DNA from: Leidyana gryllorum EB-2025a | Taxonomy: Eukaryota > Protista > Apicomplexa | Direction: 5' to 3' | DNA: 64,000 nucleotides | Assembly: GCA_048772705.1 (NCBI GenBank) | Contig: JBLWGC010000230.1 | Location: forward strand, 1,364,001-1,428,000 | Part shown: piece by piece, positions 145 through 17,732 of the stretch | How positions within the stretch are numbered: position 1 is the stretch's first letter | How the letters are laid out: every line of letters begins with the position of its first letter | Position numbers and translations under genes: made by a program | The notes under the pieces: generated by a model | Told to the model about the DNA's origin: nothing | The model's input: the letters and a program-made list of their open reading frames with translations, nothing else | Database searches by the model: none

Positions 145-790
145 TTAGGGCTCGGTGAGGCCATCATCGACATAGACAGATGGGCTCTTCTCCTCGAAGT
201 CTTTGAAGCTCTTCCGTTCCCAGCCGTGGCCGCCAGCAGCCACGACTCTCTCCATACTTTTGATAGCCGTCAAATACCACCAGCTGAGACCGAGGTACAC
301 ACACGCCCATACAGTGGACCAAAGGCACTGAAGCCAGATGATTCTCTCCAGACTCCTTCCGGCGAGATACCAGTTCGTGATGTCATAATGGCCGTATCGA
401 ACATGAATGCGGAAACGTGTCCATTTGGTGATTACGGATGCAGTCTCTATGAAAATTGCCGCAAAAGCGCCTGAAGCATTGATTCATCAGTCAGGGGGAA
501 AGCTGTGAGACATTTGCCTTCTCACCGTGTCGGAGGGCTCTGAGTCCGCCTCCCCATCTCGTGAGTGTTGAGATGAATCCCAGGACACCGATGCAGAACA
601 CAATCAGATCAAAGGCCATTTGGTCGTAGAACACTCCCCAGAGGTGTTCATCCCACTCCAACCTGATATACTCCTCCACTTTGTTGCCAATGGGGACCAG
701 AGAGACTATGAGTACGAACAGAGCCAAGGGACAGAAGCGCCAAATGGCTGCTTTGTGATCCGTCGGTGGAGGTACTGTGCACTCAAACAT
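145..790 (-). CDS. Family A four-TM membrane protein, copy A1 (196 aa; exons 526-790 and 145-470)
   Basis: ATG at 790 (MFECTVPPPTDHKAAIWRFCPLALFVL). Removing the phase-1 GTGAG...CTTCAG intron 471-525 joins it to an open exon 2 ending AIKSMERVVAAGGHGWERKSF...TEP-TAA. Four hydrophobic segments; paralogous to A2-A5. Confidence 0.85.
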
Positions 791-1083
791 TTTGGGGCAC
801 CAAGCAGCCGATCTCGGAGGTCGCACGCTCAGCCAGCTGTGCACCCGAATTCGCCTCCCAATCAATCGAACAGACCTTTGACCCCAATCTGGAAGTCAGG
901 TGTCCAAAATATTTCTTAGTCGGCTAACCTTCTCAAACTCCACGTCCAGACGCAGAACAGACGTGTTGGCAACGAAACTACAATGCAAACTCATCGGCAC
1001 AGTGTCAGTTGAGACCAAAAATGCCCATCTCGTCAAGCAAGTCATTGAGATACTTATGAATATCACCCGCGGTATATTTCCAG

Positions 1084-1738
1084 TCAGGGCTCGTTGAGCC
1101 CCTCATCGACATTGACAGATCGGCTCTTCTCCTCGAGCTGCTTGAAACTCTTCCGTTCCCAGCCGTGGCCGCCAGCAGCCACGACTCTCTCCATACTTTT
1201 GATAGCCGTCAAATACCACCAGCTGAGGCCGAGGTACACACACGCCCATACAGTGGACCAAATGCACTGGAGAAGAACTCTCTTCTCCAAATCTATGTCC
1301 TCCTGCTGCACCCAATTCCCGTTCTGGTCGTACCCCCAGCTAAAGTCGAGATACCCTTCTCGGATCGCATCCCCGTATAGGCCCCACTTGAACCATACGA
1401 CACCGATCTCGACCAATATGACAGCAATCGCCGCTGCATTGTAATTCACTGTGGAAAAAGAGTGTCTCCTCACCTTTTGGGAGAGCGCTGAGTCCAGCTT
1501 GCCACCGCCCAATCACTGAGACCAGTCCCATAACACCGACCAGAAAGACCATCACATCGAAAGTCTGAGTGGTCCAGAAGAAGGAAAACAGGTCGTCATC
1601 GTTGTAGAAATATGCGAACTCCTCCACTTTGTTGATAATGAGGAATAGAGAAACTGTCACGATGGCAAGCCCCAAAGGGCACTTTCCCCAGATAGCCGCT
1701 TTGTCGTTTCGAGTCGGGGGTATTGTGCATCGACACAT
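1084..1738 (-). CDS. Family A four-TM membrane protein, copy A2 (204 aa; intron 1434-1473)
   Basis: ORFs 1340-1738 and 1084-1512 are joined by a 40-nt GTGAG...TGCAG phase-1 intron at the same position as in A1. Exon 1 is 265 nt, as in A1 and A3. Confidence 0.85.
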
Positions 1739-2089
1739 TGGGAGTGGCAGACAAAAGTGAGTGAGTGAGTGAGTCGGTTTGTCTCACGCTTTTCACCCGA
1801 ATTCGCGTTCCAACCAATCAATCAATCAATCAATCCCAGAGACCACCGTGAATTTCTGACGGCATCAAACGTCGGATCCTATAAGCTTCCTCTTTTTCCA
1901 GAGTTGGAGGTGGACCTCCCAAAGCTCCGTATCAGACGTCAAAACAGCTTTGTTGGTAACGAAAACACAATCAATGTACACTTGTCGGTGCAGTGCCGGT
2001 CGGTTGAGACCAAAAATGCCGATCTATCCAAAGATGCTCAATGAAAATTGGCAGAATTTCGCCTTCTGAGTGACTCGGGAACTTTCACC

Positions 2090-2702
2090 CTACGCCTTGT
2101 TGAGCCCATCATCGACATAGACAGCTCGGTTCTTCTCCTCGAAGCTCTTCCGTTCCCAGCCGTGGCCGCCAGCAGCCACGACTCTCTCCATACTTTTGAT
2201 AGCCGTCAAATACCACCAGCTGAGGGCGAGATACACACACGCCCATACAGTGGACCAAATGCACTGGAAGCGAGAGGTGGACCGTTCAAGCGCCAAGTAG
2301 TCTTCAGCCCGGATAACCCAGCGATAAAGTGTGCTCCATTTGGTCATTACGAGGCCAGGTTCCATGAACATCGTAGCGAGTGCCCCTGAAACATCAGCTA
2401 CTATTCAAAAGAAAGCTTTGTGGACGTCCTTCCTCACCTCCTCTGAGTGCTCTCAATCCCCCTTCCCATCGCACAATGACCACCACCACTCCAAGAACAC
2501 CCATTGTGAGGATAATCAGATCAAAAGGTGCCACCTTCCAGTACATTGCAAGAAGTTCTTGCTCCCGGGAGTAAACTATGTGCTCTTCCGCTTTGTTAAT
2601 GATGATGCCGAGAGACACTGCCAACACAAAGAGTGCCAGTGGGCAGCATTGCCAAATGGCTGCTGCGTCGCTTCGGGTCGGCGGTATTAAGCGTCGTGGC
2701 AT
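2090..2702 (-). CDS. Family A four-TM membrane protein, copy A3 (186 aa; intron 2386-2437)
   Basis: ORFs 2394-2702 and 2090-2371 are joined by a 52-nt GT-AG phase-1 intron. Has the CCPLALFVL and AIKSMERVVAAGGHGWE motifs. Confidence 0.85.
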
Positions 2703-3166
2703 CTGTGAGCGTTTGATAAAAAGCCATGATTTGTGGCAGATCTCTCAAACTGTGCGTCAATTTCGCAGTCCCAACCTTCTGCTACGTGAATCGTTTTGCT
2801 ACTAAAGCTGCGTCTTCCAGGGAAGACGATCACTAATTCCTGCAAATGTTCAGTAACGTCTTGCGCTTGCCAGCATTGACCAGACAAAGATTGTGGGGTG
2901 AGAGGTGGTGACGCTTGTGATGGCAGATTAGTTCTGCCCTTCCGACGGCAACACAGGTTTGCTGTTTACTGAACGGTATCGTTTGAGCACTCGATTTTCG
3001 GGCTGTGGTATGGGGGTGGGGTGGTATCTGTGAGTTTCGGAGCTTTTGCGGCCGACTCTATTTGATTTTGTTACGCTTAGGATTCAACTATTGGAGTGAG
3101 AGATCAATTTCGAGGTACTCCATCCATCAGGGCCTCTATAGATTATCACAGCTTGTCAGAGATATG

Positions 3167-3799
3167 CTAAGGATCAGCAGGAGTTGTCAATGAGCCGAGT
3201 TGATTTTGCTGCTCCAGTCGGCGCTCGCGAGCCCGAGCGGCTATGAATTTGTAATCCTTGAACTCCCATCCTGAGCCTCCGATCGATATAATTTGGTGTA
3301 AGCTTTTGATGGCCCCAGAGAACCACCAATAGACAATGATATACAAGAGGAACCACACCGCGCACCAGATGAAAGCAAAGTTTGCATCTGCTGCGGTGCG
3401 CCAGCCCTCGCGCGAGCTGATTCCCAACCTGGCCATCAATGTACCGGTCTCAAGGACGACAGTCGCTTTGGCCACTGCAAGAGAGAATCAGTACAGTAGA
3501 GTGGATATGCAACCAGTCTCACCATGTCGAAGATATTTGAGACCTGTGGCCAGGCGAAATAGCACCGAGACAATGCCCAGAAGCCCAAACAAGGCGAAAA
3601 AGAGGTCAAAGAGAATGAGGAATTGCCAGGGACCATAGTTTGGCTGCTTGGTGTAGAATCCCCATACCATAATCCACCACACCAGAACGATCTTGTTAGC
3701 GAGAACGAGACTCGAAATCAGCAACACAAAGAGGGCCAAGGGACAACAGTAGCAGCCTCTGTCCAAGTCATCTCTTGTTTTCGGCAAGACACGGCACAT
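3167..3799 (-). CDS. Family A four-TM membrane protein, divergent copy A4 (194 aa; intron 3475-3522)
   Basis: CCPLALFVL motif, same phase-1 intron (GTGAG...TTGCAG), C-terminal AIKSLHQIISIGGSGWEFKDY. Confidence 0.85.
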
Positions 3800-3924: not shown

Positions 3925-4624
3925 TCACTCAGCTGAGCTATTCGCTGTTCCTGAGTCGCAAACGTTTGGTGCAATGGGGGTCTCCGGGGAGACCGCGCGC
4001 CCGTAGGCTGGGATCCGAGAGGTGGTGGTGGTAGAGGTGGTGGTGGTAGAGGTGGGCGAAGGTGGGGGCATTATGTTTCGCTCGGGCGCCGGAGCGGTTG
4101 AACGTCGCGGGGCGGCAGCCTCGATGTGAGTTTCGCGAGCTGCGCGTCTCTTCTTCAGGTGACGTTCTTCATCTCTCTTCCAGTAATAACTATGCAGGAG
4201 CACAGTGTTCAACATATGGAGCATCGCGTGCAGAACAGGAGCTGCGTCATCGAAATGCAGCCGCCCAACATGCTTGGTATCCATAGAGTGAAAGATACAC
4301 ATCACCACCCCGGCAAACGCGAACTTATCAAGCACTGAGAGAAAATCACAGACTGATTAAGCCGAGATTAATCTTACCCTCAAAGCTCGGGCAGGCGCAA
4401 CAGTGCTGCCGAAAGGCATTCTCGGCCCAGAAAACCCCAACCATCCAGAGTGACGCGGCAAAAGCGCAGAATGTGTAGCTGTGATTCGGTCAATCGACAT
4501 CTCAGTCTCAGTACCCCACTCACCTGTTGCCCGTAAACAGTTCCCACATTGCCACACTGGTGAAGCTCACGATAGGCACCAAAAGTACCAGCATGTGCCA
4601 CTCGAGTTCGAGGATTCCAACCAT
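3925..4624 (-). CDS. Family B four-TM membrane protein with Pro/Ser/Thr-rich SRIP tail, copy B1 (203 aa; introns 4479-4523 and 4335-4377)
   Basis: ATG at 4624 (MVGILELEWHMLVLL). Removing two GT-AG introns restores a frame homologous to B2-B6 (AASLWMVGVFWAENAF...CCAC). Tail contains TTSRIPAYGR. Confidence 0.8.
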
Positions 4625-4957
4625 TGTCGCTTTGGGGGCAACGAGTAGCAATGCCGCTTTGGGTCTGATTCAGCAGGTGATCTAGAACGAATCGGTCGGT
4701 TTTCGGCTAGGATTAAAATCTTTGGCCTCGCCCCGTTGCAGTGAGACACACTAACATTGAACTGTTCAGGGGCACGCACTCACAAGCTGACAGTAATGTT
4801 CACACCTGGTGAGGTCACCAGCCCCGTGCGAGCTGATTCCCCACCGGCTCATCAGTGTTCCTTTCTCACAATTCTAGTCTCCCTCATCGGCGACCTCAAC
4901 GTGATGCTGAGGTGACGTATGCTGCTTAGAGAATTTCCGTCTTGCTTCACTTCTGAG

Positions 4958-5686
4958 TTACATTGTCCGGTGGGCCTTCATGTAGAGACGGGACTCAGCT
5001 GAATCCGCTGTTGTTGAGTCGGATTCTTCTGCGGCACTGGGTGTTCCCGGCGGGGGGCGCCCGTAAGCAGGAATTCGAGAGGTGGTGCTGGGGAAATGTG
5101 GGATCACTATGTTTCGCTTGGGCGCTGGGGAGGCTGGGGGCGCGGCTGATGCTCGGTTGGCCGTGACACGTTTCTCCCGTCGTGTTCTGTAATAAGGATT
5201 CAGTGATATACTGCACCAAAACGAGAGAAAACCCGCGATTAAGTCCAGTGTGCGTCCGTTCCGCACATGTTGGTATACCCAATCTTCTAGTGCAGCTCCG
5301 CGGAGTGTCCTCAGCACCGAAGTAATCCAGATGAGGCCCCTCGCCCCCGAGAACGGTTCGATCAGTGTAAAAACTTCACAGCGCCTATCAGCTGAATTGG
5401 ACTGTACTGGCGGCACGCTCCAGCAGGTGCAGGGACGCAGCTGAAAGACGATCTCCATCACAATAATCTGGGCGAGCCAGACTGACGCGGCAACTATGGG
5501 AAAGAGGGATCTATGATTGGATCACTTTACATCTCAGTATCACTACCCCACTCACAAGCTGTGCATCATCTTCCCGAGCGCCGCAACGCCAGACAAGAGA
5601 ATGATAGGAGACAATAGATCCAGCATGAGCCGCTCAAACTTGAGGGATGAGAGCGGGAGCTTTTCTGCTTCCGCTTGGCAACTCAT
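4958..5686 (-). CDS. Family B four-TM protein, copy B2 (227 aa; intron 5511-5555)
   Basis: 131-nt exon 1 (MSCQAEAEKLPLSSLKF...), 45-nt GTGAG...CATAG phase-2 intron, then ORF 4958-5461. Confidence 0.85.
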
Positions 5687-6253
5687 TGCCGCTTCCGGGA
5701 ATCTGTTATTCGGGAATCTATGCTAGCAAACACGCAGCATGAGGGTGCAAACACACTCCGGGATCTTACCTCCGACGGCAAGAAGTCGCGATGCCATTAT
5801 GAGTTTGACTCAGCCCGAGATCTGCAACGGACCGGTACAGAGCTCAAAAAGATCTCAGACTCAGCAAAAGCACTACTTGCCAACTGCGTCTCCTTGCAAT
5901 CAGACACACTAAGAAGGAAGACTAAGAAGGAAGACACACACACCCACAGACACACACATACTCACGATGCCCCTTGAATGGACAGAAAGGTTGCATCGGG
6001 AGAGGTGTTCCAGCCCTTGCGCGAGCTGATGCCCAATCAATATACCGGATTCACAGTGTCGAGATGTTCAAGACCATTGGCCAGCCGCAACAGTACCGAG
6101 ACCCCAATGGTTAGAGAGAAGCAGACTTAAATCGAATAGTAGCACTCCTCATCCCAAGTTATCCGGTACTTGAACGTGATAGTGACTTGACGTATGCTAC
6201 TTCGAGAATTTCCGTGTAACGTTACGATTCAAGTTCGTCGTAAAACTTCTGCG

Positions 6254-7129
6254 TTACACTGTCCGGCGGGCGTTCATGTAGAGACGCTCAGCTGAATCCG
6301 CTGTTGTTGAGTCAGATTCTTCTGGGGCGATTGGTGTATCCGCGGGGGGGCGCCCGTAAGCTGGAATTCGAGAGGTGGTGCTGGGGAAATGTGGGATCAC
6401 TATGTTTCGCTTGGGCGCTGGGGGGCGCGCATAGGCTGGAATTCGAGAGGTGGTGCTGGGGAAATGTGGGGTCGCTATGTTTCGCTTGGGCGCTGGGGGG
6501 CGCCCATAAGCTGGAATTCGAGAGGTGGTGCTGAGGAAATGTGGGGTCGCTATGTTTCGCTTGGGCGCTGGGGGTGCTGGAGGCGCAGCTGATGCGCGGT
6601 TGGCCTTCACACGTACTTTTCGTCTATGTAGGTAACTACGGGCTACTGACAAACTGCAGAGAAGCGAGAAGAGGCTCGAGAGAGCATCCGCTGTGTAAGC
6701 GTGTAGCCCCTCCTCCGGCGAAATCCTCTCTTCTTTCGCCAGAACAATACCAATGATAATCAAAACAAGCAACAAGATGACCCGCGCCACTGTCAACGCA
6801 TCCAGAACCTCCAAAACTTCACAGCTGGGATCATCTGAGTCTGCGTCTACCGGCGGGACGGTCCAGCAGGTGCAGGGACGCAGCTGAAAGACCATCTCTG
6901 TCACAATAATCTCAACGAGCCAAAGTGCCGCGTCAATGATGGGATAGTAGGACCTGTGATCGGATCACTCGACATCTGAGTATCACTACCTCACTCACGG
7001 AATGTGCACCATCATCACGTACGCCGCCACGCCGGACAAGACAATGGTAGGCCACAATAAATTCAGCATCGGCCACTTAAACTTGAGGGATGAGAGCGGG
7101 AGCGTTTGTGGTTCATCTTGGCAACTCAT
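6254..7129 (-). CDS. Family B four-TM protein, copy B3 (276 aa; intron 6954-6998; three tail repeats)
   Basis: 131-nt exon 1 (MSCQDEPQTLPLSSLKFKWPML...), 45-nt intron, exon 2 containing ORF 6254-6904. Confidence 0.88.
6346..6570 (-). repeat. Three 75-nt coding tandem repeats (PAPKRNIxxPHFxSTTSRIPAYxRP) in the B3 tail
   Basis: ctggaattcgagagg recurs at 6361, 6436 and 6511. Confidence 0.95.
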
Positions 7130-7684
7130 TGCTGCTCCGGGGGATCCGCTATTCCCAAATCTGTGCTAGCAAATACGCAACATGAGGGTGCAAACACACT
7201 CCGGAGAACTTACCTCCGACGGCAAGAAGTCGCGATGCCGCTATGAGTTTGACTCAGCCCGAGATCTGCAACGGACCGGTACAGAGCTCAAAAAGATCTC
7301 AGACTCAGCAAAAGCACTATTTGCCAAGTGCGTCTCCTTGCAGTCAGACACACTAAGACGGAACACACACACACCCACAGACACACACATACTCACGATG
7401 CCCCATGACTGGACAGAAAGGTTGCATCGGGAGAGGTGTTCCAGCCCTTGCGCGAGCTGATGCCCAATCAATATACCGGATTCACAGTGTCGAGATGTTC
7501 AAGACCATTGGCCAGCCGCAACAGTACCGAGACACCAATGCTTACGGCGAACCAGACTTGAATCGAACAGTAGTACTCTTCGTCCCAAGTTATCCGGTAC
7601 TTGAACGTGAGAGTGACTTGACGTATGCTGCTTCGAGAATTTCCGTGTAACGTTACGATTCAAGTTCGTCGTAAAACTTCTGCG

Positions 7685-8423
7685 TTAAACTGTCCGGCGG
7701 GCGTTCATGTAGAGACGCTCAGCTGAATCCGCTGTTGTTGAGTCGGATTCTTCTGGGGCGATTGGTGTATCCGCGGGGGGGCGCCCGTAAGCTGGAATTC
7801 GAGAGGTGGTGCTGGGGAAATGTGGGATCACTATGTTTCGCTTGGGCGCTGGGGAGGCTGGGGGTGCGGCTGATGCTCGAATGGCGTTCACACGTTCATC
7901 CCGTCTGCGTGTGTAAAAAGTAGCTATTTGTAGACAGCACAACAACGAGAGAAACCCCGCGATTAAGTCCAGTATGACTCCGCTCATAAAACGACCGAAT
8001 GTCCAATGTTCTGCTCCAGCTCGAAGAAGTGCGCCGAACACCGAAAATACCAATAACATAGCCCTCAGCACCTCGAACCCTTCGATCAGTACAAATACTA
8101 GACACCTTGGAGCTTTATCATCATCAAAAAGATGAGCGGAGTGTACCGGCGGCACGGTCCAGCAGATGCAGGGACGCAGCTGAAAGACCATCTCTGTCAC
8201 AATAATCTCAACGAGCCAGAGTGGCGGGCAAACAATGTAATAGAAGGATCTGTGTTGGATCACTCAACGTCTCAGATCAGTACCCCACTCACAAGCTGTG
8301 CACCATCGTCCCGAACGCCGCAAAGCCAGACAAGATAATGGTAGGCCACAATAGATTCAGCATCTGCCACTCAAGCTTGAGCGATGAGCACGGGAGCGTT
8401 TCTGCTGCTGCTCGGGCAGTCAT
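7685..8423 (-). CDS. Family B four-TM protein, copy B4 (231 aa; intron 8250-8292)
   Basis: 131-nt exon 1, 43-nt GTGAG...CACAG intron, then the frame of ORF 7685-8263. Confidence 0.87.
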
Positions 8424-8903
8424 TGCTGCTGTTAGGATCCGCTATCGCAAATCTGTGCTAGCAAACACTCAATATAAGGGTGCAAACACACTTCGGGATC
8501 TTACCTCCGACGCCAAGAAGTCGCGATGTCGCTATGAGTCTGATTCAGCCCGAGATCTGCAACGGACCGGTCCAGGGCTCAAATAGATCTCAGACTCAGC
8601 AAAAGCACTATTTGCCAACTGCGTCTCCTTGCAGTCAGACACACTAAGACGGAAGACACACAGACACACACATTGTCATATACACACAGACACACACAGA
8701 TTTACTGTGTCGAGATGTTCGAGACCATTGGCCAACTGCAACTGTACCGAGACACCAATGGTTAGAGAGAAGCAGACTTGAATCGAAAAGTTGCACTCTT
8801 CATCCCAAGTTATCTGGTAATTGAACGTGATAGTGACTTGACGTATGCTGCTTCGAGAAGTTTGTGTAACGGTACAATTCAATTTCGTCTCAAAACTTCT
8901 GAG

Positions 8904-9704
8904 TTACACTGTCCGGCCCGCGTTCATGTAGATACGCTCAGCTGAATCCGCTGTTGTTGAGTCGGATTCTTCTGGGGCGATTGGTGTATCCGCGGGGGGG
9001 CGCCCGTAAGCTGGAATTCGAGAGGTGGTGCTGGGGAAATGTGGGATCACTATGTTTCGCTTGGGCGCTGGGGGGGGCCCATAAGCTGGAATTCGAGAGG
9101 TGGTGCTGAGGAAATGTGGGGTCGCTATGTTTCGCTTGGGCGCTGGGGGTGCTGGAGGCGCAGCTGATGCTCGGTTGGCCTTCACACGTACTTCTCGTCT
9201 GTGCAGGTAACTACCGGTTACTGACGCATAGCAGGCAAGCGAGAAAAGGTGCGAGACACAATCCACTGCGTAAATGTGTCGCCCCTCCTCCGGCGACCTC
9301 CTCCCATCTCTAGTCAGAACAATATTATTGGCACCCAAACCAATGAACAAGATGACCCTCGGGAACATCAACGCATGCAGAACCATCAAAACTTCACAGC
9401 TGGGATCATGTGAGTTTGCGTATACCGGCGGGCCGGTCCAGCAGGTGCAGGGACGCAGCTGAAAGACCATCTCTGTCACAATAATCTCAACCAGCCAGAG
9501 TACCGCGTCAACGATGGGATAGTAGGACCTGTGATCGGATCACTCGACATCTGAGTATCACTACCTCACTCACGGCATGTGCACCATCATCACGTATGCC
9601 GCCACGCCGGACAAGACAATGGTAGGCCACAATAGATTCAGCATCGGCCACTTAAACTTGAGGGATGAGAGCGGGAGCGTTTGTGGTTCCGCTTGGCATC
9701 TCAT
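8904..9704 (-). CDS. Family B four-TM protein, copy B5 (251 aa; intron 9529-9573; two tail repeats at 8996-9145)
   Basis: 131-nt exon 1, 45-nt intron nearly identical to that of B3, then ORF 8904-9479. Confidence 0.87.
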
Positions 9705-9937
9705 TGCTGCATCGGGGGATCCGCTATTCCCAAATCTGTGCTAGCAAACACTCAACATGAGGGTGCAAACACACTTCGGGATCTCACCTCCGACGGCAAG
9801 AAGTCGCGATGTCGCTTTGAGCCTGGCTGAGCTCGAGATGTGCAACGAACCTGGCCAGGGCTCAAATAGATCTCAGACTCAGCAAAAGCACTATTTGCCA
9901 ACTGCGTCATTTTGCACTCAGCACGCCAAGACGGTAG

Positions 9938-10035
9938 ACACGCACACACGCACACACACGCACACGCACACACACACACACACACACGCACACACACGCC
10001 GTCCACACACACACACACACACACACATTCACACG
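9938..10035. repeat. Imperfect (CA)n/(CACG)n microsatellite
   Basis: Directly visible. Shorter CA runs sit at the homologous intergenic position of the other units (about 5934, 7363 and 8656). Confidence 0.95.
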
Positions 10036-10318
10036 TTTCGGATGCCCCTTGGATGCAAGCGAAGGCTGCATCGGGTGTGGTGTCGCCCACATTGCCATCG
10101 ATATATCGGATTTACAGTGTCGAGATGTTCGAGACCATTTGCCAACCGCAACAGTACCGAGACACCAATTTTTAGCGGGGAACAGACTAGAATGGAAGAG
10201 TAGCACGCCAGTCATTCGCTACTTCAACGTGATAATGACGTGATGTATGCTTCGAGAATGTATAAGTTCACAATTGAGTTCATTGTGCTGCTGTGTGTCA
10301 CACTGTCCGCGCGGACCT

Positions 10319-11067
10319 TTATGTAATGCCAGGCTGACCTGAAGCACTTGCTGTTGTAATGGGTGTCTCCGGGAGGGGGCGCCCGTAGGCTGGAATTCGA
10401 GTGGTGGTACCGGGGAGGGGCGGGATCGCTGCGTTTTGGGCGGGGGCTGGAACATAGAGCGGAGGCAGTGGGTTAGCATCGGTCTGGATTTGGGGGGGCG
10501 TGAGGGCGGGAGCTGCTTGGGAGTTGGCCTTTTCTTGTTCTCCCTTTCTACACGTGTAAAAATGACTAACGAGCCCATTGCAGCTCAATGAGACAAAGCC
10601 CCAGACAAAGGTCAGCACGAGACTGGCGTCTCTGGCGCGGCCTGTGATTTTCCCTTCAGACTTCTGTATACCCAGATCGACCAACAAAATGATCAGAGCG
10701 ACCGCCCTCGCCGCCCCGAACAGAAGGATCACTGAAAGAAAATCACAGACTGATTCAGCTGAGATGGGCCATACCAGTACTGTTCCATTCGTCGACCCAT
10801 TCGTCGACCTCCCGCAGCTGAAACAACAGTTCCAGCACAATAACCTCAACAAGCCATAGGGCCGCGGCGACAAGGGAAAAGTAGGACCTGTGATTGGATC
10901 GGATCACTCGACATCTCACTATCGCTCCCCACTCACGGGAGGTGCCGCACTCTCTCGTACACGGCCCCAACAGAAAAGAGAAAGGTAGGGAACAAGAGTA
11001 TCAGCGTGGACCACTCGAATTTGAGGGATGAGCAGGAACGCGTTCGTGGTTCCACTCGGGAACTCAT
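10319..11067 (-). CDS. Family B four-TM protein, copy B6 (218 aa; introns 10888-10936 and 10732-10774)
   Basis: 131-nt exon 1 (MSSRVEPRTRSCSSLKFEW), exon 2 SYFSLVAAALWLVEV...; the second 43-nt intron is required to reach the VILLFGAARAV frame. Tail contains PPLY and TTRIPAYGRP. Confidence 0.8.
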
Positions 11068-11525: not shown

Positions 11526-12195
11526 TTACACCACAGAAATCGCTGACGGAGACGAGGCATGAGTGATTGTGGATTCTGTCATTGTCAATGTCTCCTCGCT
11601 GGCCGTCTCACAAACTTCCTCATGCACTAAGAGTTCCCTAAAGCTCTTCTTCTCCCAACCGTGGCCGCCTGCACGGAATACCAATTGAAGACTCTGAATC
11701 GCGCTGGACATCCACCACCAGAGGCCCAGAAGGAGCAGACCAGACACGGTAGCCCATGCTAAGTCACCGATCGCCCCTATAGCGTCTGGATCGTGTGCAT
11801 CGGCGAGCGCGAGGGCGATGAAGGCCGCCCATATCAGCACGATACCGAGCACCTCCATGCACATCACCACCGTCAACCCTGCAGCCCACATGTCACATTT
11901 TGCTGATGTTGTCAACCTCACAGAATTTCAAGAAGGACAACCCGCCAGGGGCTTTAATAAATACTGCCGCGATTGCCAAGCAACCGAACAGCCACACGGT
12001 GATTGGGAATAATACAGTCAACCACCACACCCACATCATTGCATCATACTCGCGTATGAGTATGATTCGCCTTGCTATGGTGATCGTACTTGTTGCCACA
12101 AAAAGCGTCGACGTCAACAGTACGAACATTGATAGGGATACACAGAATACCTGGCTCATGTCGCTTTTCGTCGCTGGGATGCAGCAACATTTCAT
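11526..12195 (-). CDS. Family A four-TM membrane protein, divergent copy A5 (208 aa; intron 11879-11921)
   Basis: Starts MKCCCIPATKSD, phase-1 GTGAG...TGCAG intron at the family-A position, C-terminal SAIQSLQLVFRAGGHGWEKKSF. Confidence 0.85.
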
Positions 12196-12586: not shown

Positions 12587-13054
12587 ATGCAAAACATGGC
12601 AGGTGGTATCCCATACCGGGGTGCACAAATCTTCTCCGAACAGTCGTTCAAGGACTGGGAGGCGAAGCAAGGGCTCAATAGGGTTGGGCCACCCTTTCCC
12701 GAGGAACCGATTCCCCGTTATCTCCACAATGCACCGCAGGAACACCTTGATCGGTGGCGAGCGCATACACAACCGAGGATCCCGGGGATTCCGGAGCGCA
12801 CAAGAGTCGAAAAGGAGGGTTTGCAGCGATGGTGTGTCGAGGCGGGTTGGCCATTGAGTGGTGGGATGCCCGGGATGAGTGTGGACATGGCACGAGCAGC
12901 TGCGCGTGAGAAGTACAACTTGAAACCAGGAGAGGTACCCCAACTTCAGTCAGTTTACATGGAGCGTCGAGGGCAATACGGCCCAGCCGGAGAGTACATG
13001 GTGTGTAACCTTCCTCAAGTGAATGCTCGGCAGATGCCGAGACACTTCAAATAG
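12587..13054 (+). CDS. Hypothetical protein (about 155 aa)
   Basis: Open frame with protein-like composition that fills the gap between A5 and the GH32 gene. No recognisable domain; start may be 12587 or 12596. Confidence 0.6.
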   Translation: MQNMAGGIPYRGAQIFSEQSFKDWEAKQGLNRVGPPFPEEPIPRYLHNAPQEHLDRWRAHTQPRIPGIPERTRVEKEGLQRWCVEAGWPLSGGMPGMSVDMARAAAREKYNLKPGEVPQLQSVYMERRGQYGPAGEYMVCNLPQVNARQMPRHFK

Positions 13055-15212
13055 CTTGCGATAAGAACAACAGCAGAAAAAGAGTAGTGAGAGTTCCTAT
13101 AGTTGGGTAGCCTTGCGCTAGCGCCGCGTGGTCGGTGTTATTGTGTCCCCCCCTGTACTTTAAGTAGTGAAAGTCAACGTAGCCTTGACCATGCGATGTG
13201 TAGAAACGAATGGCATCAAGTCGTTTGCGCGGGAACACCAGAGCAGTCATAGCGACTTGACCGTCATCGAAGAGCACCTCAATGCTGGACTGATCCATAG
13301 CCAAGTGCATAGTGAAAGTCGTGTTGTCCGTTAGTCGAGGGGCAGTGAGGACGAGCATAGACTCGAACGCAGAACTGAAAAGGTGGACGTTAGGGGAACG
13401 TTCAATGCGAAGTGTTCCCACGCCCCTGTGGTACCACAGGCCGACCTCGACGAATTCCGCTAAGCCATGGGCAGCGGACAAACCATCATCTACTCTAACT
13501 CGATACTCTCCATTCAGAATATTAATGGAGTTGAAGGTGACAACGCTCTCCCAAGTGGTCGTTAGATCGGAAGGGATTCTAAAATAACACCCGATATCAC
13601 GGGTGATGAGACAAATGTCGCTCTGATATCGATAGTCCGACAGATCGATGAAGGACTGGTACAATCTCAAATCGGGTCGTATCGGAGTTGAGTCTCCGTG
13701 AAGCTCCAGCCTCAGCTTCCTCGGCAATGTCAAAGCTCCTTTCCATGGGAATGTCGGCACCAGATTCGCATACAGCTGATTGCTCATCCAGGCTTGATAT
13801 ACCAATTCTCGATCCAGCCCGCCTGAATAAGTCACCGCACTGGCACTGTCAGGCCCGTAATCCAACCACTTTGGGTACGCTTCTGGATTTTCCACAGGTT
13901 TGAAGTGATAATTGCTGAACGTTCCCACGAAATACATTGTGCCGGACCCTCGGTTGGGCCCGTCAATGTACTCCCCTCCGAGATTATAGCTTTTCGGCGG
14001 ACGTGATTGGACAGTCACCAACAACACGTAATAGGGGGAAGATGAAGAAGACGCGTGGTCCAGCCTAATCGGGAAAAAATCAGGATGGGTCCAATAGTTC
14101 CCAAGAACTCCCCAAACTTTGGGGTCAGTGAATCGGTCCGGGTGATTACAGAGAGGGTCGTGCTCTCGGAATCCACGCGTTCTGGGATCGTCCGCATCAA
14201 AAGGTCCAAAGTAACTTCGCGGTGTCCAATCTCGTAAATTATCTGACGAATAGAACAATATTCGCTCGCAGTTGGCGATCACTGCTATGAATTCCCCATT
14301 TTCAAGTTGAACTATCTTTGGGTCGCGTTTGTGCAGCTCCCAGTCAACAGCCTCCTGATAGCAGACGGTGTCCCCTTCGTCCCTCCCGCTGGCAGACGGA
14401 GGAGCGCAGTAGTGCCAGTAGCCCATGTTGGACTCGGCAGAATTATAAATACCGGCCTCCTGCATGGAGACCAGCGTCATTGTCGAAGGATATTGTTGCC
14501 CATCAGACGACAGCCTTCTTGTGGTGGTGGTGGTGGTGGTGGTAGAGGTGGTGTTGGTGGAGACAGCATTGGAATTGGTGTGGCGAGATTCGAAGGAGCG
14601 ACCTTCTTTTTCTCCGCTGCAGCTGTCGTCTGAGACAGCCGCGACGGCAGTATTGGTAGTAGAGATTGGAGAGGAAGCATTATCGGCAGAGGCCTTCGGG
14701 ATGGGGGGCGGCCCTTCATTGTTTGACTGTAAAAACATATATCCCATCATCTGTTCCTCGGTCACTGGGATTGCGAAGTCAGGATAGGCGTGGGTCCATT
14801 CGGAGCGATCGGTCCACATGAATACCAGTGCATTGTTACCGAATCCGGCAACGTTGTCGACGTCCTGGATGACGTTACCACTTCCAGGCATACCAACATG
14901 ATTAGCCAAAGGCCATCGAGGCCTCAGCACTATCCCTTGATCTCTCCAACCCAGGAGATTCCGAGACGATGCCCAGCGCCAGTGCATCGGTCCCGACGTA
15001 GTATTGTAAGGATTGTGTTGGTAGAAGGCAATGTATGCATCACCATTATGAAAAAGTCCGTTGGGTTCAGCTCCCCAACCTGCTGGGGGACTGAGATGAA
15101 ACACAGGACGCCACTGTTCATGGAATGTTGGCTGATAAACTTCCTCAACGGGCTGCTCGACAGCAAACACACAATGAATTAACAAGAGCCACCAGATTGG
15201 TGTCAGCATCAT
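13047..15212 (-). CDS. Glycoside hydrolase family 32 (levanase/invertase-like) protein with signal peptide and GPI-type C-terminus; degenerate active site
   Basis: WRPVFHLSPPAGWGAEPNG (cf. WMNDPNG), FYQHNPY, GPMHW, RDP, WLDYGPD, WMSNQLYANLVPTFPWKGALTLPRKL, DQSSIEVLFDDG. Hydrophobic N- and C-termini; intronless. Confidence 0.92.
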   Translation of the reverse strand: MMLTPIWWLLLIHCVFAVEQPVEEVYQPTFHEQWRPVFHLSPPAGWGAEPNGLFHNGDAYIAFYQHNPYNTTSGPMHWRWASSRNLLGWRDQGIVLRPRWPLANHVGMPGSGNVIQDVDNVAGFGNNALVFMWTDRSEWTHAYPDFAIPVTEEQMMGYMFLQSNNEGPPPIPKASADNASSPISTTNTAVAAVSDDSCSGEKEGRSFESRHTNSNAVSTNTTSTTTTTTTTRRLSSDGQQYPSTMTLVSMQEAGIYNSAESNMGYWHYCAPPSASGRDEGDTVCYQEAVDWELHKRDPKIVQLENGEFIAVIANCERILFYSSDNLRDWTPRSYFGPFDADDPRTRGFREHDPLCNHPDRFTDPKVWGVLGNYWTHPDFFPIRLDHASSSSSPYYVLLVTVQSRPPKSYNLGGEYIDGPNRGSGTMYFVGTFSNYHFKPVENPEAYPKWLDYGPDSASAVTYSGGLDRELVYQAWMSNQLYANLVPTFPWKGALTLPRKLRLELHGDSTPIRPDLRLYQSFIDLSDYRYQSDICLITRDIGCYFRIPSDLTTTWESVVTFNSINILNGEYRVRVDDGLSAAHGLAEFVEVGLWYHRGVGTLRIERSPNVHLFSSAFESMLVLTAPRLTDNTTFTMHLAMDQSSIEVLFDDGQVAMTALVFPRKRLDAIRFYTSHGQGYVDFHYLKYRGGHNNTDHAALAQGYPTIGTLTTLFLLLFLSQAI

Positions 15213-15479
15213 CTTGCCTGAACATCATTTACAAACAGATAATAAAGCTTTTGACACCCCAATCTAAACGGAAGTACTGCTGCCCGAGCTTCAGATTGAC
15301 ACCTTTGATCCGCTGGCTACCTGAGTGGGTGGTGTAGAGTGGATGGATGAATTGTGTGTTTAAGTAAAGTAGTCCACCTTCGTCAATGTGCGGAGAATCT
15401 CCGTCGTCGTTTTCGGACTACTGCCTGCTGTGTTCGTTCCCAAGAAGCCCTTCAAGACCTTCGTTCCATACCTTCCACC

Positions 15480-17414
15480 TCATAAAAAGTCAGTCAGTAG
15501 CCATGTGGCTACAATCAAGAGCAATGAGGAGGGCAAAATCGCAGACGAGGCGGACGATATCTGTGTCGGAACGACACTCCGCAAGCCGAAAACCTCAATG
15601 AAGTCATGTTGGGCGACGTTCGCATGTAGAGCTGTCATTTGACTGTTCAAATCCAGCGCAAGCGTCAGTGACTGGAGCCCCCCGTCAATAATAATTTCGA
15701 TAGATTTTCGATCCACCACCATGTGAGCCAGTAGGTATGAGGCTTTGCTCACGCGAGGCGCTGTAATCACATTCATCATTTCATGCATTGTCGAACTCGA
15801 ACCTTCAGGCCTCTTAATCATTATCCTCTCCTGGCCGACGTTCCCCATCACCCACAAAGCCACCAAACTTGGATTCTGAGCTGTCCCGACTCGGAGCAAT
15901 GGGACAGAGGAGTCGATCATTTCGCGTTCAATCGTGATGTTAGCGAACACCTCAAAGGCACCAGGATTGTGTGATGGGGTTCTGATGATACATAGGCCAT
16001 TGGTGCTTTGACAGCGATCTCGCCAGTCGTCGCGGATATGCTTCAGACTGACGAAGTTTTGAATCAGTCTGTAGCCTGACGGAGTTTCTCGATCAGCAAT
16101 CAGCGCCAACTCTCGTGGCAGAGTCATCTGATTCCGCCATGGCCATCCTGTTAGGGAATCTTCATACAACTTATTCACCATCCAGCCCATCATGACTGCC
16201 GTTCCCTTTGGTGCGTTCTCAACTAGACTGGGACTCTGAAAGTCGGGGCCCTCATCTACCCACTGAGGATTGTCGTTGCTACTGCCTTTAATCCTCAAGA
16301 CGGGGAGATCTTCCTTGGCAACTGTGGACCCCAAACTTGCTTTAATCTCCTCTGGAGTTTCCAAGATGAAATACAAAGTACCACTGCCGCGTTGGGGACC
16401 ATCCGCAATCTCAGAGTCATTAAAGGCCTGTTCATCCCGGCCTTTCAGAGTGATCAAAAGAACATCTCGAACCTCTTGACTGCCCTGTACACCCAGCCGT
16501 ACCAACCTCGGCTGCTGCCAACCTGCTCCCAACCTCCCCCAAACCCGGTCTTTCGTGAGAGAGGCTCCCGGATGACACCGGAAGTCGTGCACCCGGAAAC
16601 CTGGGTGGGTGGCGTTTGGATGAGTTCTTTCGTCCGGCCCTTCCAAAGTTCCAACGTGTCCCGCTGATGTCCAGTTCAACCCATTGCGACTCTCGTACAG
16701 CAACACCCTGTCGCAATTGGCGAGTAGCATACGGAGACATTGCGAGGAAGGGTCCCTGGCGCATTGGGCGCGGTAGACATATGGATCGGTGAACTCGGTT
16801 TCCACGGACGCAGTCACAGGAAGGTACCGATTAGTGTCAGGATCCACCTCCCAGTAGGGCACGTTGGTAGCTTTACTGGTTTCGAGTACGACCTGGGCTC
16901 CAATGATTGGCAGCAACGCTTTCTTGTAGCCCGCGCTTGAAGGGATTCGCACCATTTTGATGGTGTCTATATACGGCAGCGTGGCTAGGTACCGGTAAGT
17001 GCGCTCGGCATAGTAGATATAGGGAGTTCTCAGTAGTCCGGAGGCGGCTCCGTCGGAGTTGACGAGGACCGAGCCGCCGGTAGGCACGAGATGCTTGGAG
17101 TATTGGGTGTAGGGCTCCAAAACAATTCCTTCGTCTTCCCAAGTCAGGAGATCTGGTGAAGTAGCCCACCTCCAGTACGACGAATTGACCAGAAGGTACT
17201 TTGGGTTATGGTGATACAGGAGGTTATATTGGTTATTGTGGTAGTATATACTTTGGGGACGCCATACAAACCCCGCTGGCGCGGTGAAGTGGACTTGAGG
17301 CCGCGTAGGCTCTCGGAACGTCGGAGTGAAGATATCTTCGATCCATTCGTGGGCATAGCGGGACTCCTGGAGGTTGAGCCCATATGCAGGAAGAAGCAAA
17401 ATACTCCACCTCAT
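15480..17414 (-). CDS. Second GH32-fold protein (644 aa) with signal peptide and GPI-type C-terminus; strongly degenerate active site
   Basis: Starts MRWSILLLPAYG; RPQVHFTAPAG, YHHNP, WATSPDLLTW, TDP, WVDEGPDF, WRNQMTLPREL, DRKSIEI. Shares specific insertions with the neighbouring paralog. Confidence 0.88.
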   Translation of the reverse strand: MRWSILLLPAYGLNLQESRYAHEWIEDIFTPTFREPTRPQVHFTAPAGFVWRPQSIYYHNNQYNLLYHHNPKYLLVNSSYWRWATSPDLLTWEDEGIVLEPYTQYSKHLVPTGGSVLVNSDGAASGLLRTPYIYYAERTYRYLATLPYIDTIKMVRIPSSAGYKKALLPIIGAQVVLETSKATNVPYWEVDPDTNRYLPVTASVETEFTDPYVYRAQCARDPSSQCLRMLLANCDRVLLYESRNGLNWTSAGHVGTLEGPDERTHPNATHPGFRVHDFRCHPGASLTKDRVWGRLGAGWQQPRLVRLGVQGSQEVRDVLLITLKGRDEQAFNDSEIADGPQRGSGTLYFILETPEEIKASLGSTVAKEDLPVLRIKGSSNDNPQWVDEGPDFQSPSLVENAPKGTAVMMGWMVNKLYEDSLTGWPWRNQMTLPRELALIADRETPSGYRLIQNFVSLKHIRDDWRDRCQSTNGLCIIRTPSHNPGAFEVFANITIEREMIDSSVPLLRVGTAQNPSLVALWVMGNVGQERIMIKRPEGSSSTMHEMMNVITAPRVSKASYLLAHMVVDRKSIEIIIDGGLQSLTLALDLNSQMTALHANVAQHDFIEVFGLRSVVPTQISSASSAILPSSLLLIVATWLLTDFL

Positions 17415-17429
17415 TTTTTTCACCCAAAA

Positions 17430-17732
17430 ATGACTGACGATGTGCCGAAGCATGTGATAGCTGAGTATCTGAAGGAGCTCAAGGCCAAGGAGACCGAAAT
17501 CTTGGCTCGGGAAGAAGCCGCGCTGGCGCCCAAATTCTCCAAGACGAGAAAGGGATTTCGACGGGTGGCACATAAACTGGGACAGACCGTTATCTGGTCC
17601 ACTATTATCGCGTTCTCAATGATGCAGACGGCCTCACTCCTCAATATGATTTATCCAATCAATGAACTCAACTGCAAGTATGACGGCTGGCCATCGTGGG
17701 ATGCTAATGAAGTCATCAATGTATGGGATTAG
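17430..17732 (+). CDS. Small hypothetical single-TM protein (100 aa)
   Basis: AAAAATG context, charged helical N-terminal half, hydrophobic TVIWSTIIAFSMMQTASLLNMIY; fills the gap between the GH32 gene and calpain. Confidence 0.6.
   Translation: MTDDVPKHVIAEYLKELKAKETEILAREEAALAPKFSKTRKGFRRVAHKLGQTVIWSTIIAFSMMQTASLLNMIYPINELNCKYDGWPSWDANEVINVWD

Follow-up and report, generated by a model that had tools for sequence, protein, structure and literature searches.

In a 64,000-nucleotide (nt) window of Leidyana gryllorum EB-2025a (contig JBLWGC010000230.1, positions 1,364,001 to 1,428,000), six tandem paralogs on the minus strand, here called B1 to B6, differ in the apparent use of one homologous 43-nt stretch. 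The reading that this stretch serves as an obligatory intron in B1 and B6 and as coding sequence in B2 to B5 stands as the best account of the predicted gene models, of splice-signal scores, of intron conservation and of simulations of open reading frame (ORF) maintenance. We interpret it as an intron/coding switch of a kind known from fungi and nematodes, probably an exonisation. The explanation as a whole, in which all six paralogs are translated, B1 and B6 splice the segment out and the segment became exonic in the common ancestor of B2 to B5, is in our judgment somewhat probable.

Gene models of the B array

Each copy was modelled as an exon 1 running from the ATG to a GTGAGTG donor, followed by intron 1 and then the remainder to the stop codon. 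All six copies share a phase-2 intron 1 of 43 to 49 nt, after which B2 to B5 continue as one long exon to the stop; B1 and B6 continue as two exons split by the 43-nt phase-1 intron. Under these models all six ORFs are open (203 to 276 codons).

3925 to 4624, minus strand: gene B1; exons 4624-4524, 4478-4378 and 4334-3925 (stop included); 203 amino acids; ORF intact only with both introns removed
4958 to 5686, minus strand: gene B2; exons 5686-5556 and 5510-4958; 227 amino acids; ORF intact with intron 1 only removed
6254 to 7129, minus strand: gene B3; exons 7129-6999 and 6953-6254; 276 amino acids
7685 to 8423, minus strand: gene B4; exons 8423-8293 and 8249-7685; 231 amino acids
8904 to 9704, minus strand: gene B5; exons 9704-9574 and 9528-8904; 251 amino acids
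10319 to 11067, minus strand: gene B6; exons 11067-10937, 10887-10775 and 10731-10319; 218 amino acids; ORF intact only with both introns removed

The predicted products have four hydrophobic stretches and a proline-rich tail with an invariant motif ending RIPAYGR. As one part of the joint explanation, the six genes would be paralogs that are translated into an orphan four-helix membrane protein. The segment in dispute follows directly on a CxC motif, in the interval from the second to the third hydrophobic stretch; this motif is kept in B1 and in B2 to B5 and lost in B6.

A homologous 43-nt segment in two states

The three 43-mers quoted for B1, B2 and B6 in a preliminary description of this DNA were reproduced at their positions on the minus strand. 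The segment takes the following forms across the array, with donor and acceptor scores from the matrices described below.

4335 to 4377, minus strand: B1 predicted intron 2; 43 nt, phase 1, GTAAGA...CAG; donor 9.0, acceptor 7.0; 35/43 identical to the B6 intron
5365 to 5407, minus strand: B2 coding counterpart of intron 2; 14 codons plus shared bases; donor -7.0; ends CAC
6808 to 6850, minus strand: B3 coding segment; donor -4.5; latent 42-nt GT...GAG at 6850-6809 with acceptor 1.6
8089 to 8146, minus strand: B4 coding segment; 58 nt (+15 nt, a multiple of three); donor -5.4; no AG
9383 to 9425, minus strand: B5 coding segment; 38/43 identical to B3; donor -0.9; no AG
10732 to 10774, minus strand: B6 predicted intron 2; 43 nt, phase 1, GTATGG...CAG; donor 4.5, acceptor 7.8

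Without gaps, 35 of 43 positions are identical between B1 and B6, 27 between B2 and B6, and 22 between B1 and B2. The B2-B6 value, earlier counted by hand, was confirmed on recounting; its binomial P is ~1e-6, and it was reached by 0 of 200,000 shuffles. A MAFFT alignment of the six genes places the initial GTA in one column in all copies, and the TGT core is likewise matched by column. The segment is thus positionally homologous, with flanks that align, and it carries splice signals in one state that are absent in the other, as in de-intronization and intronization events. The TGT core sits inside CTGTGA in every copy except B4, so the earlier proposal that CTGTGA supplies a conserved Cys codon holds for B2, B3 and B5 and fails for B4, where only the TGT is kept. 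All five differences between the B3 and B5 segments change an amino acid.

The reading frame discriminates between the two states. Up to the segment, exon 2 has 101 nt in B1 and 103 nt in B2 to B5; in B6 a 12-nt tandem duplication at 10785 to 10808, encoding VDEW twice, brings the 101 nt to 113. Because exon 2 of B2 to B5 is 2 nt longer than that of B1, the 43 + 2 bases make up 15 codons in frame. With the segment removed, B1 and B6 are open from ATG to stop; with it retained, read-through in the exon 2 frame stops after 10 codons in B1 and after 6 in B6. The preliminary description was accurate on these points: a 43-nt phase-1 GT-AG intron is needed in both end copies, B2 keeps the GTA, ends in CAC and reads in frame behind an exon 2 nt longer than that of B1, and B3, B4 and B5 also translate the segment, B4 with its 15 additional nt. 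It was also right that the B6 intron is free of stops in the B2 frame; the B1 intron contains one TAA in that frame.

Splice signals

Splice signals were scored with donor and acceptor matrices built from 44 ORF-joining introns, collected from 200 kb of this contig plus the remainder of the window. To be included, an intron had to measure 35 to 75 nt, start with a GT[AG][AT]G donor and end in YAG, a choice that in part predetermines those positions. The 44 introns measure 42 to 66 nt, mostly 45 to 50 (the mode), with the form GT[AG]AG...YAG, and leave-one-out donor/acceptor scores have a minimum of 2.4/1.2 and a median of 9.3/5.4. The scores of B1 (9.0/7.0) and B6 (4.5/7.8) fall inside this range, as does the 43-nt length of intron 2. 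Donors in B2 to B5 score from -7.0 to -0.9, low because none has a G at +5, and no segment ends in AG. The latent 42-nt GT...GAG noted earlier in B3 does exist, although its donor reaches only -4.5.

By signal fit, by length, and by a frame that is restored on removal and broken on retention, the 43-nt piece of B1 and B6 behaves as a spliceosomal GT-AG intron. It would be, as a second part of the joint explanation, a true intron in the loop between helices 2 and 3, with splicing itself predicted from these signals. Intron 2 and most intron 1 copies contain a GTGAT motif whose A is 12 nt ahead of the 3' end (B1 intron 1 has TTGAC at the matching place), and the TGTGA within the segment is probably the branch site.

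We give very little credence to the view that the models are mistaken or the genes unexpressed; on this view B2 to B5 might, for instance, also excise a piece here through non-canonical sites, or the ORFs might be no genes at all. The family is an orphan, with no Pfam match and no homolog in the searches made, which would be consistent with such a view. Against it, six diverged copies keep ORFs of 203 to 276 codons and an invariant tail motif, and a scan of every donor-acceptor pair spaced 35 to 90 nt apart, which recovered introns 1 and 2, found no candidate in-frame intron over the segment in B2 to B5.

Direction of the change

The maximum likelihood (ML) tree, which is unrooted, has long branches to B1 (0.63) and B6 (0.47) and a stem of 0.10 (support 85/86) leading to the pairs (B2,B4) and (B3,B5). 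That stem alone carries the switch between the intron and coding states, and B1 and B6 lie together on one side of it, so counting changes cannot separate gain from loss. The preliminary description had argued that parsimony favours exonisation since the two divergent end copies share the intron; this argument fails, as either direction costs one change on an unrooted tree.

Root placement is weakly informative. The midpoint root falls on the B1 branch, and a non-reversible root test assigned expected likelihood weights of 0.58 to the B6 branch, 0.16 to B2, 0.07 to B1 and 0.07 to the stem. Summed over positions, roots that make the intron ancestral take ~0.65 of the weight and roots inside B2 to B5, which make the coding state ancestral, ~0.28, with the ambiguous stem at 0.07. 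In the upstream spacer and exon 1, B6 is ~68-72% like B2 to B5 and B1 ~42-47%; for the spacer the two figures are ~68% and ~42%. The segment starts with GTA in all four coding copies, and GTA is the rarest Val codon here (12%). The earlier claim of exonisation in the B2-B5 ancestor is therefore retained as the favoured direction on root weight, though not shown, while its polarity argument as worded is dropped.

Exonisation could have proceeded as follows. In the common ancestor of B2 to B5 the intron most likely ceased to be spliced, because, we propose, the donor +5 G and the acceptor AG were lost. A gain of 2 nt just upstream would have put the retained 43 nt in frame, lengthening the loop by 15 residues, and the probable branch-site TGTGA would now supply the Cys codon.

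The reverse course, intronisation, is unlikely but far from negligible. It posits a coding ancestor, after which a donor, a pyrimidine tract and an AG would have arisen in a B1/B6 ancestor and 2 nt would have been lost upstream. It too is one change on the same branch, equal in cost to exonisation; roots inside B2 to B5 hold ~0.28 of the weight and the stem 0.07, most of these positions are unrejected, and surveys cited in PMC3629103 count more intronisations than de-intronisations. It nonetheless requires several constructive changes plus an indel, a root on the stem or within B2 to B5 fits clock-like rooting worse than the midpoint on the B1 branch, and B6 groups with B2 to B5 rather than with B1 in the spacer and exon 1.

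Several observations weigh against the favoured explanation. The root test rejected only the B3 branch, the B5 branch and the B3+B5 stem. Gene conversion is evident among the copies, with tails 97-98% alike compared with 54-76% in the helix 3-4 region, and gene conversion among B2 to B5 distorts branch lengths, which makes clock-type rooting unsafe. No outgroup was obtained: with single exon products as queries (joined models were only translated, aligned and simulated), 0 matches came from a word search on the B3 exon 2 product, from 1.84 billion representative proteins searched by profile and from metagenome contigs. The ratio of nonsynonymous to synonymous substitution rates (dN/dS) is 0.75 to 1.4 for every B pair, which alone looks neutral. 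Finally, only 2 of 156 annotation-based candidates in fission yeast were supported by transcripts and most others were disproved (PMC3629103), a base rate that is the main reason for caution. The B-array case is sturdier than such candidates because the frame forces both states.

Constraint on the reading frames and introns

A dN/dS of 0.75 to 1.4 with every ORF open fits diversifying or very relaxed selection on residues combined with selection for an open frame. When neutral evolution was simulated along the terminal branches of the ML tree, the spliced ORF was stop-free in 0.3% of runs for B1 and 0.2% for B6, and exon 3 alone was open in 2-3%. The simulations say that the open frames were kept by selection. 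Indels are multiples of three in coding sequence (+15, +12) and not in intron 1 (43, 45 and 49 nt).

These results bear on the proposal that B1 and B6 are frameshifted dead copies with the 43 nt unspliced, only B2 to B5 being functional. That the end copies are dead genes is unlikely, and this particular account of them highly improbable. Consistent with it are the dN/dS near 1, the missing shared upstream spacer and shortened N-terminus of B1, and third and fourth hydrophobic peaks in B1 that lie below those of B3 to B6. However, the 101+43 layout is common to two copies at a dS of ~0.8, so any frameshift would be old and decay of exon 3 would be expected by now; exon 3 is nevertheless open in both copies (135 and 136 codons) and retains the tail motif, at a neutral chance of 2-3% each. 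The splice signals of B1 and B6 are also typical of the genome, and their 43 nt are conserved above synonymous sites.

That conservation is pronounced. Intron 2 of B1 and that of B6 differ at only 8 of 43 sites, compared with a difference of 0.49 at synonymous sites, which are ~51% identical (Fisher P 6e-4), and 6 of 34 differ when the splice ends are left out (P 9e-4). Intron 1 has the following copies.

4479 to 4523, minus strand: B1 intron 1; phase 2, 45 nt, GTGAGTG...CAG
5511 to 5555, minus strand: B2 intron 1; GTGAGTG...TAG
6954 to 6998, minus strand: B3 intron 1; GTGAGTG...CAG
8250 to 8292, minus strand: B4 intron 1; GTGAGTG...CAG
9529 to 9573, minus strand: B5 intron 1; GTGAGTG...CAG
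10888 to 10936, minus strand: B6 intron 1; GTGAGTG...CAG

By aligned bases intron 1 is 80-100% identical across all six copies, compared with 42-72% for exon 1 between B1, B6 and the B2-B5 group, and it is more conserved than synonymous sites (difference ~0.5) in all pairs (Fisher P 3e-3 to 1e-5). Over ~250 nt before their start codons, B2 to B6 are 66-90% alike; in intron 1 and these upstream stretches, non-coding sequence of the B array is conserved above coding sequence. No known RNA families were found in the conserved introns and spacers.

It is improbable, though conceivable given that both introns are ~80% identical and synonymous sites ~50%, that both tiny introns are functional elements, perhaps controlling expression or splicing of the copies. 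B2 to B5 would then have escaped this control by making intron 2 a coding loop that brings in a new Cys, and some alternative splicing might persist at the 42-nt site of B3.

Comparison with known systems

De-intronization and intronization have been described in Cryptococcus (PMC2740785) and Schizosaccharomyces (PMC3629103). As there, the intron occupies the position of a homologous coding stretch, the flanks align well, and the change accompanies splice-signal mutations in a gene-dense genome with short introns (PMC2740785, PMC3629103). The B array differs in that its copies are tandem paralogs in one genome rather than orthologs, and in that the intron length is not a multiple of three, which brings a compensating 2-nt indel into the event; it is also a case seen at the sequence level, for which the searches yielded no outgroup. 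In plants, imprecise intron loss and de-exonization have been reported; there too extra or missing coding bases remain instead of a precise deletion, but the plant cases are mostly genomic deletions, whereas in B2 to B5 the whole intron appears to have been kept and translated (PMC4443532).

An intron seldom turns into coding sequence or the reverse, and many published examples were annotations later disproved by transcripts. In the B array both states are imposed by the sequence itself, 43 not being divisible by three. The two states adjoin in one array, where the compensating 2-nt indel and the probable turning of a branch site into a Cys codon are both visible. While no new class of mechanism is opened, the array offers a compact test case for intron loss and gain in short-intron genomes and contributes data on the gregarines, a barely sampled lineage.

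Mobile introner-like elements give rise to intron gain, and they resemble the B array in that a short intron is present or absent among close gene copies. Unlike in such gains, the intron-less B copies hold homologous bases, so no insertion is involved. A mobile intron of this type was rejected as a candidate: the 3' 23 nt of the intron match only its own two B sites in the 15.5-Mb genome at ≤3 mismatches.

Array organization and neighbouring genes

Family B has six copies in the 15.5-Mb assembly, the only ones recovered when three different exon products served as queries. In the helix 3-4 region two types alternate along the array (4958 to 9704; B2 and B4 versus B3 and B5), and some repeat families within the array are spaced 2575 nt apart. 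The alternation and the spacing suggest that a two-gene unit was duplicated, with the tails later homogenised to 97-98%. Tandem repeats of 75 nt at 6322 to 6571 and 8972 to 9146 expand a tail module ending SRIPAYG, of which B3 has three copies, B5 two, B2, B4 and B6 one each, and B1 one diverged copy. (CA)n-rich microsatellites occur in the spacers upstream of several B genes (9930 to 10030, 5940 to 5960), the longest preceding B5.

Five four-helix genes of another family, A, flank the array (145 to 3799 and 11526 to 12195), and the contig carries further copies immediately upstream of the window. Each flanking family A gene has one phase-1 intron of 40 to 55 nt in the helix 2-3 loop (43 nt at 11879 to 11921 in the fifth, A5). 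Family A was tried and rejected as an outgroup to B, or as sharing its origin, at an hhalign probability of 0.1-0.3% with no profile similarity. What the two families appear to share, by analogy only, is the four-helix layout and a phase-1 intron of 40 to 55 nt in the helix 2-3 loop.

At 13047 to 17573 there is a tandem pair of GH32 (fructosidase-like) genes. The best matches of the first, only ~30% identical over about half of the query, are 500-amino-acid metagenome proteins that carry the annotation fructan beta-fructosidase. Among named matches to a neighbouring PRP6-type gene, the best are in Gregarina sp. (51%) and Blabericola (50%), then Toxoplasma (44%). The genome is eugregarine-like, with sharply short introns.

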